Source of the DNA: Hyphochytrium catenoides
Lineage: Eukaryota > Protista > Hyphochytriomycota
Direction: 5' to 3'
Length of the DNA: 64,000 nucleotides
NCBI GenBank assembly: GCA_900088475.1
Contig: FLMG01002851.1
Location: forward strand, 1 to 64,000
In this document: positions 57,000 through 64,000 of the stretch, piece by piece
How positions within the stretch are numbered: the stretch's first letter is position 1
Layout of the letters: the number at the start of each line of letters is the position of its first letter
Notes under the pieces: model-generated
The model's database searches: none
Seen by the model: the letters and a program-made list of their open reading frames with translations, nothing else
Told to the model about the DNA's origin: nothing
Translations under genes and position numbers: made by a program

Positions 57000-58563
57000 A
57001 TGGCCGCTGAAGCTCGTGATAGCATTCATATCAGGAGAATATCGCGGCATGTTGAAGACGTAAGACCATAGTCTTGTTTTACAGATGAAGTATAGAACTG
57101 GGACTCACATTATGCGAGAATGCTTACTCATAGGCCGGGAGCTTTTTGGCACAGTCAAAGAAAATGGTAACCTGGAGATTCGTTGTTGGTCCGCGCGACG
57201 AGCTCCACACGGTTATTCTGGAGCATTCGCTGCTCAAGGCCAAGAAAATTATCAAGCTCGATGGTTGGCAGATTCTACGGCAGGAGACTCCCACAATGGG
57301 TGATGAATGGAGGCACAAGTTCTTTATTAAAAATTGGGACTTCCCCTGCGAACTTGTTATCCGTACAGTCGCTGCAAGCGTACAAATGTCCGGGATGCGC
57401 TCTCCTTACGACTTAGAACTAAATGGCATCCAGTGGCATGAACTGCCGGAGCAAACAATATCCAGGCCAGGTATAGAGGATCCTTCTTAGACGTCAATTT
57501 GCCAGTGCCTTTCATATCTAAACAGAGTCCGCAGGGGCGTCCTCTAGCGGGTCTCATGTATGGAGCAGCACCAACCTGCCCCGGCAAGTGCAGAAAGTAG
57601 AGGAGGCTGTCTCCGACGAGGAAGTTTGGGTTAAGTGGTTCTTTTGCTTTGGAGTAAGGAGTGAGGTTCACACGCTCATCCTAGAGCACAACGCTTCAGG
57701 GAGAAAGATCTTACGGCTAAACAACAAGGTAGTGTACACCTAGTTCTCTGATTCTTACTACGATGATGTCTTACATATCTCTTACTCTCTCCCGACTGTT
57801 TCTGCTGCAGCTGGCGGCGCAGTATACACAGGATCACGAAGGAGACTGCGAGCTTGTCTGCTCCTTCCCTGGTCACTCCATGACAGTCCGTATCCTAGAC
57901 ACAGATCCTTACACCTATCAGTTAATCGTGGACGGAGTAGATTTTGATGCAATGATTCCAACTGACTTCACGCTAAAAGAAGGCTGGGAGAGCGTCAAGC
58001 CAGCCTCGGGGCCGAAGATGCACTACAGGAATATGAAGACTGGAGAGACGAGCACAGATGTACCGACCCAGCCACGAGGAGATCCGCAAGTTCTCAGTGC
58101 GTCTAAAGAGACCAAGCTTGGAGAAGTTGGGGCTGGCGACACAGTGTTGACAAGCACTAAACGCTTAGGAGAACGAGAAGACATTTCTCATGAAGCAGTG
58201 GCTGACCTGTTAAACATATCTGCCACAAGCGCCAACTCTGCCGCACAGCCTTTTTCAGGACCAAGACCGTTGACGGAAGATATTCCTCCTTCTCATGCTG
58301 AAGTGCGGGATATTCCTACTGCCGAAAGGAAGGCCGCAGCGACAGCAGATCTTCTAGACCTGTCTGCGGAGGAAACATCAATAGTTGCGGCGGTCCAATC
58401 TTTTGATCCATTTTCTACTTCCACCGCGGAGCAGGCAAGCCATGGACCCCTTAGTGACCTGATGGAGGTTCAACATCAACAGCCAATGGCAATGGCTGCG
58501 CGACCGGTAGCATGGGCTGTCAGTGATCCATTCCGAGAGCTCTCGCAGTCTGACGGTCGATAG
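57000..58563 (+). CDS. Protein with two FAIM1-like beta-sandwich domains, an atypical WW domain and a disordered tail with DLL/DPF motifs; 4 exons
   Basis: VTWRF...LHTVILEHSLLKAKKIIKLDG...YDLELNG and VKWFF...VHTLILEHNASGRKILRLNN...YQLIVDG. WW-like LKEGWESV..SG..HYRNMKTGETSTDVP. Exons join in frame from ATG 57000. Confidence 0.7.
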
Positions 58564-58611
58564 TGGACAAGATATAGTCGCGATGCTTAAACAGTACTCT
58601 TCTGATTATCT

Positions 58612-61600
58612 TTATGGCACATCGGAGCTCTGCAACTTAGCTGGTGAGAGCAAAGATGTGGGACTAATCAGCGAACTGACGGACTGGCTGACTGCCAGGG
58701 GAGTGAGGGACGCAGCAGGTGCGCCACATTTCTCTCTGAAGTCTGGATGCTTGGAGAAGATCTTTTCGTAGAAGTCTCGTGTCCTTCTTAGGAACGGGTC
58801 AGCGCTCTGCCATACCTTCTCTATGCCTAGCACGCTATCTAGCGCTCTTATCGCTCCTACATCGCGATGAGCGGAGGGAAGGTCCAACCGTCGAAAAAGA
58901 AAAACAAGATCGAACGACGACCAGGGAGCCCACAGCATAGACCATGGCCGTGCAATCAAGACGTTGGAGTTAGTATTATTCAGCGTTGTTGGCCTTAGGC
59001 TTGACCTAGAGGGCCCTTACCTTGCGCATAGCCTAGCACTTCTTGTGAAGACACACGGGAGAGTGTACCCTGCCGGATCGGAGAGGAAGCTTAGGCAGCA
59101 CGTCCTATATGCGAGCATACCCCATACCAGTATTTATAGCACCCATGCCTTCTGAAATCCACTATTGGCCTCCCTCTGTCTCCACATGGTGACCTCACTC
59201 ATCTTCACAATGGTAACTCTCGCTCTGGCTCAAGTGTAAGCTTTCGTACCTGAACTGTCCACTCACTCAGCATCCTAGCGACTTGTTCGTGCACATGTAA
59301 CGGAACGTTGGCGCCGCTTTTGTCTCCTTCTGCTGAGGTGGTCGCTCCTACTAGTGCTTCATACATAAAGTTATCCATGGCCAATTGTCGTAGGGATGCT
59401 GTGAGACGCTCTTTCCTCGACAGTACGGCGGTCACTAGCGACTGGCAAAAGGAGTCATCGACCAAAAGCTCCTCCTTTGTCCAAAGGTTCTGGAAGAGGA
59501 GCTTACAAGGAAAGACAGCGCCACGCTTGACCATAGTGATTGCATAATACATCATCACCTTAAATGGGTGCAGGAACGAGAGATGAGGAGGATAAATTAA
59601 TGGTTGAGGCCAAGGCAGAAAAGGTAGATAAGCCCATAATGATCCTACTTTGCCAAGGGCGGACTCATAGTTCATGAGCTCTTTCAGAACGGGATCTAAG
59701 GGTGGAAGCGCTTCGATGCCTATTTTGTGGGGAGGGGACACGAAGAGGTGAGGTGATGATTAAGAAGGGCGGAGACCTGTTAATCACTATAAACATTTAC
59801 CTTTCGAAGCCACCAAGCTTCCCGAGACCATACGAATCTCCACCGTGAAATGGGCCATCAATGGACAGAAGACGCGGCCCACTGCTGGATCGGCTTCGCG
59901 CACCACATACTCCTACAGCACACGTTCACAGCCATCAGGGTCACAACGTAAGGAGAGGAGTGGGGCATCAGCGCCACGCGTCAACGTTCAAGCTTACCCT
60001 AAGCTTCTTCATTCTCAATATGGACTCTGGGCTTCCAAGCGTTAAGAGCTGCACAATGCCTGGCATCAAGGGATGGTCCTGGCACCGAGCAGGCAGTTAG
60101 GTTCAAGAGAAAGTGTGCAGTCGATTAGCTGGTTGAGTTCACGATAGCCTCTTGTAGACATTGGGCACCTTCGGCAGCTGGCTTTTCGCAATGGCTTCAT
60201 TCACTACACGGACTAGACTCCTAATGAGCAGGTTCTGGACGAAAGGATTGCCCAGGAGGAAACAGACATCAAGAAGTGCTGGCATGTAGACCTCGCGAGG
60301 CAGAACAGGCTGACCGCTCTGGACAATTGAGAGGAGAGCGGCGAGTAAATAAACGTTATCGCACTGCCACTTAGTGATGGCAAAAGGCGGATTGGAGAGC
60401 TCACTCTACCCACATGATTCGGGCTTGCCAGCGTCCTTCTTCTCTTGGGCCTACTGCCTGGTTGCCGCTGCGGATTCAGCATCAATCGAGCCGCTTCAAA
60501 CACCTTCTCCGCCTTCGACTGGAGTTTCTGTGAAAAGGACAGAGACGTACATGGCAGGGTCAGACACAAGGCGAACCGCACGCGACGATAGTTGACCCCT
60601 GTCATCATCAAATGGAGATTCCGTGCAAGCCCTGCGGAGCCGTTTGGCCGTTTCTCTCTACCCATGATACCCGCTGTATCTCTTCAGCCCATAAAGTGGA
60701 ACTGTACCTTAGCATGCTTGAAGTATATAGTGTCAGGTTCATTGAAGAGGAGACAGTTATTGATCATCAACTGGAAGTCAGATTCAAGGTCTTCTACCGA
60801 CTTATACTGCTCAAACGTAGAGGGCAAGACAGGTGCGAAGGCGTTCAGCGTGATCATGTGTTAGGTTAATGTTCCCGGATGTCAATAGCAAGTCTTGGCT
60901 AATTTTACCTCTTCCCCTTCAGCCTTTCGCTGCATAGTAGAGAGATCCATGGGTTCGGAGATAATCTCCCGGTAACCTGGCACATCGTCTGGAACGGGTA
61001 GTGCAAATATATTGTGGGTATCATACTTGCTTAAGCTGGATAACACATACTGCAAGACCTATGCCGCGTGGAAAGACGAAGCAACGTTAGACATCACAGT
61101 TTGACACGCCTGGCACTAACACCCTATTCAAGCAAGCTTTAAACACTTTGGTGTCAGCGCAGGTGCGCACAGGTCCAAAATCATCAGGTAAGGTAGAGCT
61201 TACTACCAGGAGGAAACGCCGCCATCACCATTCTCTAACCACTCTAGCTGCTCTAGGAGTGGGGCTAGATTCATGCATCGCTTTAAAACCTCAGAGCTTT
61301 CGAATGCTCCTTTTGAGCCTGGCAGGCAGTAAGTGGCTCACCTCAGGAAGGGGTATGGGTGCGTAGTCAGCTTCATCGTCATAGTCACCAAGCATACTTA
61401 TATCCCCTGAAGAATGAGCTTAGCCTTCAGGTAACATCTCCCGTCGCCTTTTGCTCTTACCTAGTCGGTACTCTGCGATGATCTTCTGGATTTCGGTAAG
61501 CCTGGAGCTGTCCAGGTGGGGATACTTTAGCGCTGCATCCAGCGCCCACGCCAAGCGACTAATAGAGTCCTCCTTTAGGGCCTATGCAGAGACAGAGTTG

Positions 61601-63374
61601 AGGCCATAGAGTTCAATTATATATAGATACGATAGTGAGCGGAAGCATAGGGGTAGAAAGAGGAACCTTTACCAGACTTACCGATGGTTGAACGTCCTTA
61701 TGTGAGAGGATGATATCCATGCGAAGTGCCAAGAGAAGCGGGTTCTGTGTCTCTTCGTATTTCTCAGCGATGAGCGTTGAGAAAGAGTTGAATAGGGTCT
61801 ACGAAACATAAAGGACGGAAGTAACCGGGAAAAGCAGAGGTGGAAGAGACCTTTAATACAATGTACCGCAGATTACGGCGTCTTCCAGCTCCTCTAACCT
61901 TGGAAGTCCCAAGAGCTGTGATAATCTTGCGTAAGCTCTGGTCGCCGTGCCGTCTAAGAAAAGATGGGGTCGAGAGCCATCGAGAAATAGAAGTCGGAGA
62001 TTGAGTCTAAAAGAAGCATATCACCTTTCTTGCCCCATTGTAACTATTTCACTCTTCAATGCGTTGACAAGTTATCACTTTGACCAATGTACCATCATCT
62101 TCCCATATCTCCACTCTCTTGAATCGTCTTTCTCGATCAGGTGGACAACTCCGCTACGTTATTACTCCTCCTCGATCTTACCTGGTCTCTGCCGAGATGG
62201 TATGGTCTCCGGTCATGTCCAGGGCATACGATGCCGTGTGTCTGTTTTTTACATAGTCTTCTATATAGCCTCCCACCGCTCCGAAGAACACTTTCTCATC
62301 CAGCTCCCAGACTCTGCTTTTCACATGTAGAGGTAACTCCCTCATGATATCAGGCTTGATAGCTAAAGAGCGAAGGAAAGGCTCTGGAATATGCGACCCA
62401 GGGCGTGAGATAAGAGCAATAGGGACAGGGCGGAGCTCTGGGAAGTCAATAAAGGGAAAGGTCTTGGCAAGAAGGATGCCAAGCTTTTCAGCCTCCATGG
62501 TCCTGATGCGGTCTATGTATAAGAACGAGCGTGGAGAGCAATAGTTAGACTTGTTTGTGTGCTGCTTTGCTGGAGTACAACCTGGCCCTTTAACCCTCTT
62601 CTTCCCCTCTTATCCAGTCTCTCCTCAAGCTTTGGTCTTTACTCTTTAGCTCCCTCACTAACACTGTCCCCTTTATGTGAATGTTGGACCTCACCAAGTA
62701 AGTGCCGGCGCAGCTCTGTGACAATGGAAAGATAAAGGTCTGATCGCGCCATGTTTAGCTGTTCAAGCAGCGTAATGGCCGAGTCCACGCTTCCTAGTTT
62801 GAGAGCGTTCTGCTGCTGGAACTCGGTGATCGTCATCGCTGGGTCAGCGGATTTGCTGTAAGGGAAAATGGGAAGGGAAGGAGAGAGCGGATAAGTCTAA
62901 GAGAGCGGCGATAGAAGACAGAGTACACGCGACAGAAAAAAACCAGGGAGTTAGTAGGAAGGAGACAATAGTCCAAGCTGTCATTCCTAGAGACGGCGAG
63001 ACTAGAGCTATTCTCTCAGCTCCAAGCGCTTATAGGGAAGTCACATGGCAAGAGTATGGCGCGTTCTCAGCAAGGTAATCAGAGTAATCAAGCCTTCAGC
63101 AACCCAAGAGCACGGAAGGGAGAGACTCACGAAAGAGGGCCAGCAAGAGAGAGGATAAAGAAGGGAGAGAGCAGTAAGGCGAAAGAAGGACCGCACACAG
63201 AGGAAGAGAGTAGAGAGAGAGAGAGACAAGGGACAACGAGAAGAGAAATAAAAGACAACTTATATCCACGTAACAGGACCTTAGGGCATCGCGCAGGACT
63301 GCTCCTCCAAGCGAGCCAATCAAGGCCACCGGAGAGTGACCGGGATTCATCTCTCCGCCTCCCACCGTCGACAT
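58612..63374 (-). CDS. NELFB: Negative elongation factor B (COBRA1) homologue with an internal bromodomain; multi-exon
   Basis: Colinear NELF-B motifs: LRDALSKSADPAMTITEFQQQNAL, LLAKTFPFIDFPELRPV, LPLHVKSRVWE, LLALRMDIILS, RLAWALDAAL...DSSRLTEIQ, LLDVCFLLGNPF, SQLPK|DHPLMPGIVQLLTLG. Bromodomain exons are 61058-60909, 60806-60708 and 60527 onward. Confidence 0.88.
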
Positions 63375-64000
63375 TCTGGTAGTAAGAGAGACAAGAGCTA
63401 AGACCGGGACGCCAAGGGAGGGGCTCGACGTGAGGAACAGAGAGCTGAACGTGCCAGCAGTGCTAAGCGTCCTACAAGCGTTAGCTCTTGCTAGTACGCT
63501 CCTGCAGCAGCGCAAAAGTGACCGACAAGCTTGTCGGTCACTTGTGAAGCAGGAATCATAGAAGAACACCGCTCTCTGCTGCTAGTGGACAAACGAGGAA
63601 GAAGATACTGACATGAGGTATCGTCTGCAATTTCAAGAGAGGAGAAAGCCTAAAGGGAAAGAAGGGAAAGAAGAGACCGCTCGTTGAGAATTAGAAAGCT
63701 CACGATAGGGAAGAGGAGCCGCAGGATGTCTATAAACGTTGCTCCTCGATACAGAGAGAGAGCAAGCCAAGAGAGAGAGAGAGAGGGAGTCCAGACAGAG
63801 GCGTGAGCTAGCAAGCTGGGAGACCGGGGAGACAGAGTGCTCGTTGGGCTGGAGAGCTTGGAAGCGCTGAGCATGCCGCCGCGGTCGAGCGAGGACAGGA
63901 AGGTTCAGGAAGCCAATCGCGAGTGCTCAAGAGCTGGCCAAGATGCTGATGGTCTGCTTGGGGGGAATACGTATGAGCCACGAACCTCAGCTCGAAAATT

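Follow-up and report, generated by a model that had tools for sequence, protein, structure and literature searches.

A minus-strand gene between positions 63374 and 58612 of the window appears to encode a bromodomain in the middle of NELF-B (COBRA1), and it raises two questions: does this domain truly belong to NELF-B, and if so, what might it do there? The window is the whole stretch of DNA that was analysed, 64,000 nucleotides of Hyphochytrium catenoides (contig FLMG01002851.1 of assembly GCA_900088475.1). The predicted gene has 17 exons separated by introns that all have GT-AG ends, which gives a coding sequence of 2325 nt, a protein of 774 amino acids (aa) and a reading frame that is continuous to a TAA stop. 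A profile hidden Markov model was made from 47 bromodomain-free NELF-B homologues and was aligned with the spliced gene model. The profile matched as one domain of 354.5 bits, from position 8 to 557 of 606 in the profile and from residue 13 to 736 in the model, with only one long insertion, which falls between nodes 286 and 287 and holds model residues ~293-444. Some 280 NELF-B residues precede the insert and some 330 follow it; the bromodomain is therefore nested within NELF-B and is not a C-terminal domain. The exons of the gene model are as follows.

Exon 1, 63280..63374, minus strand: aa 1-32, start codon at 63374; aligns with homologue N-termini from about aa 13
Exon 2, 62695..62855, minus strand: aa 32-86, NELF-B N-terminal region, from the NELF-B profile alignment
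Exon 3, 62182..62512, minus strand: aa 86-196, the most recognisable NELF-B block, from Pfam COBRA1
Exon 4, 61899..61953, minus strand: aa 196-214, from frame and NELF-B profile alignment
Exon 5, 61682..61798, minus strand: aa 215-253, from frame and NELF-B profile alignment
Exon 6, 61461..61581, minus strand: aa 254-294, final NELF-B helix ahead of the insert, RLAWALDAALKYPHLDSSRLTEIQKIIAEY (RLAWALDAALKY...); ends in phase 1
Exon 7, 61342..61406, minus strand: aa 294-315, 65 nt, GDISMLGDYDDEADYAPIPLPE; linker 1 of the insert, acidic and with low conservation
Exon 8, 60909..61058, minus strand: aa 316-365, 150 nt, phase 0-0; helix Z, ZA loop and helix A of the bromodomain
Exon 9, 60708..60806, minus strand: aa 366-398, 99 nt, phase 0-0; helix B, BC loop and start of helix C
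Exon 10, 60414..60527, minus strand: aa 399-436, phase 0-0; remainder of helix C, then linker 2 with RPKRRR; donor CAT/GTGGGT at 60414
Exon 11, 60169..60318, minus strand: aa 437-486, end of the insert near aa 444 (60295), after which NELF-B resumes with LLDVCFLLGNPFVQNLL...
Exon 12, 59998..60078, minus strand: aa 487-513, NELF-B middle region, DHPLMPGIVQLLTLG, from alignment and profile
Exon 13, 59801..59912, minus strand: aa 514-551, from frame and NELF-B profile alignment
Exon 14, 59649..59719, minus strand: aa 551-574, from frame and NELF-B profile alignment
Exon 15, 59250..59558, minus strand: aa 575-677, NELF-B C-terminal region, from homologue matches and profile
Exon 16, 59021..59069, minus strand: aa 678-694, from frame
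Exon 17, 58612..58856, minus strand: aa 694-774, TAA stop; the NELF-B profile alignment ends at aa 736

Exon 7 is required to keep the frame between the exon of the final helix and the bromodomain exons. Exon 10, which starts at 60527, must end at 60414: use of the next GT as its donor causes a frameshift, and that donor was therefore rejected. An earlier reading of this DNA, made from its letters alone (the sequence-only reading), had quoted peptides that were all found on the minus strand where it had put them. Its exon layout was right in the helix exon, the 150-nt and 99-nt exons and the exon from 60527, and incomplete in that exon 7 (61406-61342) went unmentioned.

The identity of the flanking parts was also examined exon by exon. 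Exon 3 alone matched Pfam COBRA1 (PF06209) over profile positions 2-76 of 348 with 22.4 bits (cut-off 22; E 7e-5), and when it was used in a sequence search of PDB, the sole match was human NELF-B, residues 91-185 (E 8e-6). Exon 11 gave a weak COBRA1 match (profile 192-227, E 0.17) and, searched alone against the PDB sequences, found nothing. A HMMER search of a representative protein library with exon 3 recovered 146 NELF-B relatives. All 146 were matched by the N-terminal 300 residues of the model (phmmer, best E 4e-43), and 27 of them by its C-terminal 338 residues; these 27 include bromodomain-less NELF-Bs, matched downstream where this would be expected. The window protein is at best 50 % identical to any representative, and its own entry is absent from the representative set. 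A homologue search with the relative P0006 as query returned only unrelated bromodomain proteins. At the two edges of the insert, the helix of exon 6 aligns with the 'DPCHKF.WCLDAC' helix of other NELF-Bs and exon 11 with the 'LGD.AM.L.DPF' of all NELF-Bs. The sequence-only reading had recognised NELF-B on both sides of the bromodomain, and this agrees with the COBRA1 match of exon 3, the PDB match to NELF-B and the 354.5-bit alignment of the whole model.

By homology, then, the locus is the NELF-B orthologue of a stramenopile; NELF-B is the central member of the ancient NELF-B/NELF-C(D) core. The window protein resembles animal NELF-B (human Q8WX92; PDB 6GML, 8JJ6 and 9J0N chain V) in having a scaffold, predicted to consist of helical repeats, that is homologous end to end, but animal NELF is not known to have a chromatin-reader domain, whereas the NELF-B of the window has a bromodomain. 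In the animal complex, NELF-B is the central subunit, which binds NELF-C through its N-terminal region and cradles NELF-E (PMC4940160). NELF-B and NELF-C/D are widely distributed, while NELF-A and NELF-E were derived later (Chivu et al., bioRxiv 10.1101/2023.02.19.529146).

The insert holds a complete bromodomain as judged by the family profile PF00439. Exon 8 matches positions 4-49 of the 84 in this profile (E 9.5e-9) and exon 9 positions 51-83 (E 3.8e-8); since these coordinates are contiguous over the two exons, the splice rebuilds one contiguous domain. For both halves the closest single-bromodomain match in PDB is BRD9 (exon 8, E 8e-7; exon 9, E 1.5e-7), with exon 8 aligned to 8-53 and exon 9 to 58-90 of entry 5I7X; the next matches are BRD7, BRPF1 and BRD1. 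'FALPV' of the window protein is aligned with 'FAFPV' of BRD9, and the Tyr of 'PGY' (Y344, codon 60974-60972) with the ZA-loop Tyr. The Asn of 'FN' (N387, codon 60743-60741) is aligned with the acetyl-lysine-anchoring Asn of BRD9 and Y393 (codon 60725-60723), at Asn+6, with its Tyr gatekeeper; we take the BRD9 residues to have the roles that these names imply. Two differences were seen: the residue before the Asn is F386 where BRD9 has Tyr, and the ZA loop has one residue fewer than that of BRD9. From its best matches and the Tyr gatekeeper, the domain would be classed as family-IV-like (BRD9/BRD7/BRPF type). The Pfam and BRD9 alignments confirm the description in the sequence-only reading of an intact bromodomain with ZA-loop Tyr, BC-loop Asn, FAxPV motif and Tyr gatekeeper; that reading had called the motif BRD7/9- or GCN5-like, and the domain is BRD7/9-like. 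BRD9, BRD7, BRPF1 (peregrin) and BRD1 are its best matches in sequence and, for the modelled orthologue P0016, in structure, and they share with it FAxPV, the PGY Tyr, the Asn and the Tyr at Asn+6. Their bromodomains, however, are strung like beads in the scaffolds of SWI/SNF or of the MOZ/HBO1 acetyltransferases, whereas here the domain is inserted inside a fold of the elongation machinery.

Just past helix C there is a basic motif, RPKRRR (60435-60452, minus strand, aa 424-429). At the same position the oomycete proteins, P0006 and P0016 have K/R-rich patches (KKRRK, SKRRK, KRPK, KKRK). RPKRRR could be a candidate nuclear localisation signal, or a contact for DNA or the acidic patch. In mammals, a Lys-rich helix of NELF-E contacts nucleosomal DNA (PMC11881899).

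Where in NELF-B does the insert lie? In a multiple alignment, the same loop holds it in all proteins that bear the bromodomain, and the bromodomain-less NELF-Bs have 6-8 residues there. With P0024, which is closely related to the human protein, as an intermediate, this loop maps to ~D288-L298 of human NELF-B (GFLDGVKKGQEQVLGD), so that animal NELF-B has ~10 residues (~288-298) where the window protein has ~150 including the bromodomain. The statement in the sequence-only reading that the two flanking blocks are close together in human NELF-B was thus accurate. The N-terminal region of human NELF-B crosslinks to and binds NELF-C, and the middle region, 291-438, has been proposed as a hinge (Vos et al. 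2016; PMC4940160); the insertion loop is at the border of these two regions. Rhizarian NELF-Bs (Plasmodiophora, Spongospora) have expansions of ~10-14 residues at this loop (Chivu et al. supplement, bioRxiv 10.1101/2023.02.19.529146). The loop seems generally tolerant of insertions.

The same arrangement was found in other organisms. Out of the 146 relatives, eight full-length proteins were found in which a bromodomain separates the NELF-B N and C parts: those of Phytophthora palmivora (POM57477.1), P. ramorum (H3GUF8/XP_067740293.1, annotated 'Bromodomain-containing protein 1') and Albugo laibachii (CCA18079.1), plus five further relatives. The entire arrangement lies in an uninterrupted open reading frame (ORF) in five relatives, P0017 (L001), P0040 (L002), P0006 (L003), P0131 (L004) and P0016, the last with a gene range of 2697 nt, or 898 codons plus stop; the contigs that bear these ORFs are genomic or environmental. 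Since this order of parts recurs without interruption in relatives, NELF-B and the bromodomain are, on comparative grounds, one gene. The sequence-only reading had taken them as such; it had also proposed a survey of stramenopiles for the architecture, and at least eight relatives, Phytophthora and Albugo among them, have a bromodomain in the same loop.

Two other features of these relatives were noted. The environmental protein P0131 (L004 1501-4761) has two tandem bromodomains, at 386-484 and 588-681, both in the NELF-B loop. Three database gene models, P0091, P0161 and P0027, end inside the first half of the bromodomain. These are probably models truncated at an intron, and the architecture is therefore under-counted in protein databases.

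A maximum-likelihood tree of the NELF-B part with the insert removed (LG+G4, quick search on a fast alignment, with weak deep branches) groups the window protein with P0006, P0016 and the oomycetes Phytophthora and Albugo with SH-aLRT support (from the likelihood-ratio test in its approximate, Shimodaira-Hasegawa-like form) of 98 %, and next with P0040/P0091 at 82 %. P0017 and P0131, which are long-branched bearers, were placed elsewhere. When all ten bearers were forced into one clade, the likelihood was 30.6 log units above that of the free quick search, and the approximately unbiased (AU) test gave p 0.857. The data are fully compatible with a single insertion event. Given the AU value for one clade, the stray positions of P0017 and P0131 are no evidence for a second origin.

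Conservation differs among the segments of the protein. In comparisons of the window with eight bearers, identity is 32-49 % in the bromodomain, 24-33 % in the NELF-B N part and 13-30 % in the NELF-B middle/C part. Wherever at least 9 positions align, identity is ~25 % or less in both linkers, and ~20 % or lower in the exon 7 linker. Residues that are invariant in the nine orthologues include F333, A334, P336, V337, Y344, P351, M352, L354, Y366, N382, C383 and N387. In these alignments the bromodomain is the best conserved segment of the predicted protein; the domain hangs on two poorly conserved and probably flexible linkers. A ligand-binding domain held by flexible tethers would be expected to show this pattern.

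An AlphaFold2 model was made for the nearest orthologue, P0016, from a 55-sequence alignment; its mean predicted local distance difference test score (pLDDT) is 81.2 and its predicted template-modelling score (pTM) 0.71. The P0016 bromodomain is predicted with pLDDT 87-97, and the linkers 309-349 and 491-505, including the equivalent of exon 7, have pLDDT below 50. In a Foldseek search of PDB the first matches of the model are NELF-B chains (8W8E_V, 8JJ6_A, 9J0N_V, 9J0O_V, 8UHA_V), with E values down to 3.5e-12 and template-modelling scores by target of 0.60-0.66. The bromodomains of BRD1, BRPF1, BRD9 and BRD7 were also found, with a root-mean-square deviation (rmsd) of ~1.0-1.2 A and 36 % identity; BRPF1 and BRD1 are the best bromodomain matches of P0016.

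How much of this was already on record? The combination of NELF-B with a bromodomain has been recorded by Chivu et al., whose supplement (bioRxiv 10.1101/2023.02.19.529146, 2024; also Table S1) describes all stramenopile NELF-Bs examined as having a "C-terminal Bromodomain" and says of such differences that they 'might reflect functional changes', with no further statement. Their Pfam table lists Aurantiochytrium limacinum with COBRA1 at 180-318 and a bromodomain at 400-482; Hondaea fermentalgiana is another of the bearers that they report. Since other entries of the EukProt set that they used have MMETSP transcriptome identifiers, the A. limacinum protein is probably transcript-level support from a labyrinthulomycete. 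Full-text literature searches on NELF-B or COBRA1 in connection with bromodomains, oomycetes or stramenopiles turned up no paper whose main text takes up the combination. The novelty implied by the sequence-only reading was nevertheless too high, given the supplement of Chivu et al.

The window protein is like the stramenopile NELF-Bs of that survey in having COBRA1 and PF00439 in one protein; on its NELF-B part it groups with the Phytophthora and Albugo proteins, and the insertion site is the same. The description 'C-terminal' arose from Pfam seeing only the N-terminal part of COBRA1, whereas here ~330 NELF-B residues follow the domain, and the published description is accordingly corrected to nested. 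Database names ("Bromodomain-containing protein 1", "hypothetical") and the Pfam annotation hide the NELF-B identity of such proteins. What is new here is this hidden identity, the nested topology, the mapping to a single loop, the family-IV character, the invariant pocket and the probably flexible linkers.

What might a bromodomain do in NELF-B? We favour, with somewhat better than even confidence, the explanation that the family-IV-like bromodomain, nested in a short surface loop of stramenopile NELF-B just after the NELF-C-binding N-terminal region, serves as a chromatin reader. That the domain binds acetyl-lysine is likely from its pocket residues. More tentatively, and at less than even confidence, it might tether or orient NELF on acetylated promoter-proximal chromatin, most simply on the tails of the +1 nucleosome, much as the sequence-only reading had suggested. 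In mammalian structures the NELF-BE lobe constitutes the elongation complex's downstream edge, lying near RPB5 and either close to the +1 nucleosome or in clash with it, and helix alpha-1 of NELF-E touches nucleosomal DNA (PMC11881899). From such a lobe, a bromodomain on linkers of 20-40 residues could reach the histone tails of the downstream nucleosome. In a lineage that has only the B-C/D core in the survey of Chivu et al., the reader may replace the contacts made in animals by NELF-A and NELF-E.

The other core subunit shows a parallel. Stramenopile homologues of NELF-C/D (TH1), e.g. P. sojae XP_009523672.1, have N-terminal WW domains (Chivu et al. Table S1, bioRxiv 10.1101/2023.02.19.529146). 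Both core NELF subunits seem to have gained interaction modules in the stramenopile lineage, and one may speculate that the core complex acquired its own means of recruitment there. An extended form of this idea, which we regard as rather doubtful, is that of a 'reader-equipped' core, in which the NELF-B bromodomain would read acetylated +1 tails and the NELF-C/D WW domains would read proline-rich or phosphorylated motifs of the C-terminal-domain (CTD) type, together replacing the Pol II- and RNA-binding tentacles of NELF-A and NELF-E.

In animals, histone acetylation is tied to the control of promoter-proximal pausing through the bromodomain of BRD4 and through P-TEFb. The likeness is one of functional analogy only: BRD4 is a separate pause-release factor, whereas here the reader would be inside the pausing factor itself. 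If the core is indeed reader-equipped, histone acetylation would act as a direct gate on early elongation in this lineage, where animals couple the two only indirectly via BRD4 and P-TEFb. NELF is commonly seen as a pausing factor of animals that lacks a chromatin-reading module. A conserved and apparently functional (predicted) acetyl-lysine reader, in the subunit that faces the +1 nucleosome in mammals, offers a testable handle on the core NELF of protists, and raises the questions of whether acetylation recruits or positions NELF and whether this affects pausing. Aurantiochytrium and Phaeodactylum are non-pathogenic, genetically tractable stramenopiles.

Several points weigh against the nested-reader explanation. 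There are bromodomains that keep the Asn and yet bind weakly or recognise targets other than histones. The predicted structure is that of the orthologue P0016, which is 34 % identical over the NELF-B part. No RNA sequencing run is listed for the organism, and the three DNA runs that cover the locus are genomic contigs without splice joints; because of this, splicing in H. catenoides was inferred from frame, splice signals and homology. Joint skipping of exons 7-10, which total 428 nt, would shift the frame, but exons 8-10 are each phase 0-0 and skipping of these alone stays in frame, so that an in-frame isoform without the bromodomain may be made.

In the best-placed alternative, the bromodomain does function, but its target is an acetylated protein other than a histone (for instance a transcription factor, an elongation factor or NELF itself), or else the protein acts outside pausing; the link to the +1 nucleosome would then be wrong. 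We consider this unlikely, although it is the most serious competitor. The conservation of the pocket residues is silent on the ligand, and family-IV bromodomains bind various acyl-lysine peptides to judge from PDB titles. Animal NELF-B is reported to have a cytoplasmic function that is independent of pausing (PMC10591015). Set against these points, the titles of the same kind of entries give the closest solved relatives, BRPF1, BRD1 and BRD9, as readers of histone tails, and the NELF-BE lobe adjoins the nucleosome in mammalian structures (PMC11881899).

It is less probable still that the domain has lost ligand binding and now serves as a structural spacer or as a protein-protein interface in a divergent NELF-like complex. 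F386 in place of the Tyr before the Asn and the shorter ZA loop would fit such a loss, but nine orthologues that are only 13-33 % identical in their NELF-B parts all keep Y344, N387 and the motifs PV and PMxL unchanged, the bromodomain is the best conserved segment of these proteins, and the predicted fold of P0016 matches BRD1 at ~1 A rmsd. A very improbable third alternative, that the bromodomain exons come from a separate or alternative transcript and that the constitutive protein is an ordinary NELF-B, draws on the in-frame skipping of exons 8-10 and the lack of a listed RNA run, but five relatives have N part, bromodomain and C part in one uninterrupted ORF, in the A. limacinum protein (probably transcript-derived) a bromodomain comes after COBRA1, joining exon 8 to exon 9 restores one contiguous domain, and the cassette contains no start or stop and so leaves no room for a separate gene. 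On the relatives' ORFs, the exon 8/9 junction and the cassette, both a separate gene for the bromodomain and an artefact of exon trapping were rejected, and a nested reader in stramenopile NELF-B is left as the preferred explanation.

The three DNA runs were also compared with window positions 58500-63500, and differences were found at at least 40 positions. Those that distinguish the runs from one another are fewer in exons (14, of which 8 synonymous and 6 non-synonymous) than outside them (26), and the non-synonymous ones include Arg/Lys and Asp/Glu exchanges. At several positions, e.g. 59723-59774, 61031-61085 and 63035-63062, two variants occur inside one run, which suggests heterozygosity or mixtures of strains. 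Near the gene, a plus-strand ORF of 266 aa (57763-58563) has its end 48 bp away from the stop codon of NELF-B, making the two genes convergent with almost no spacer between them. Long CT-rich tracts (ctctctct...) are present on the minus strand at 63160-63260, in the first intron, and at 63760-63800, upstream of the start codon.

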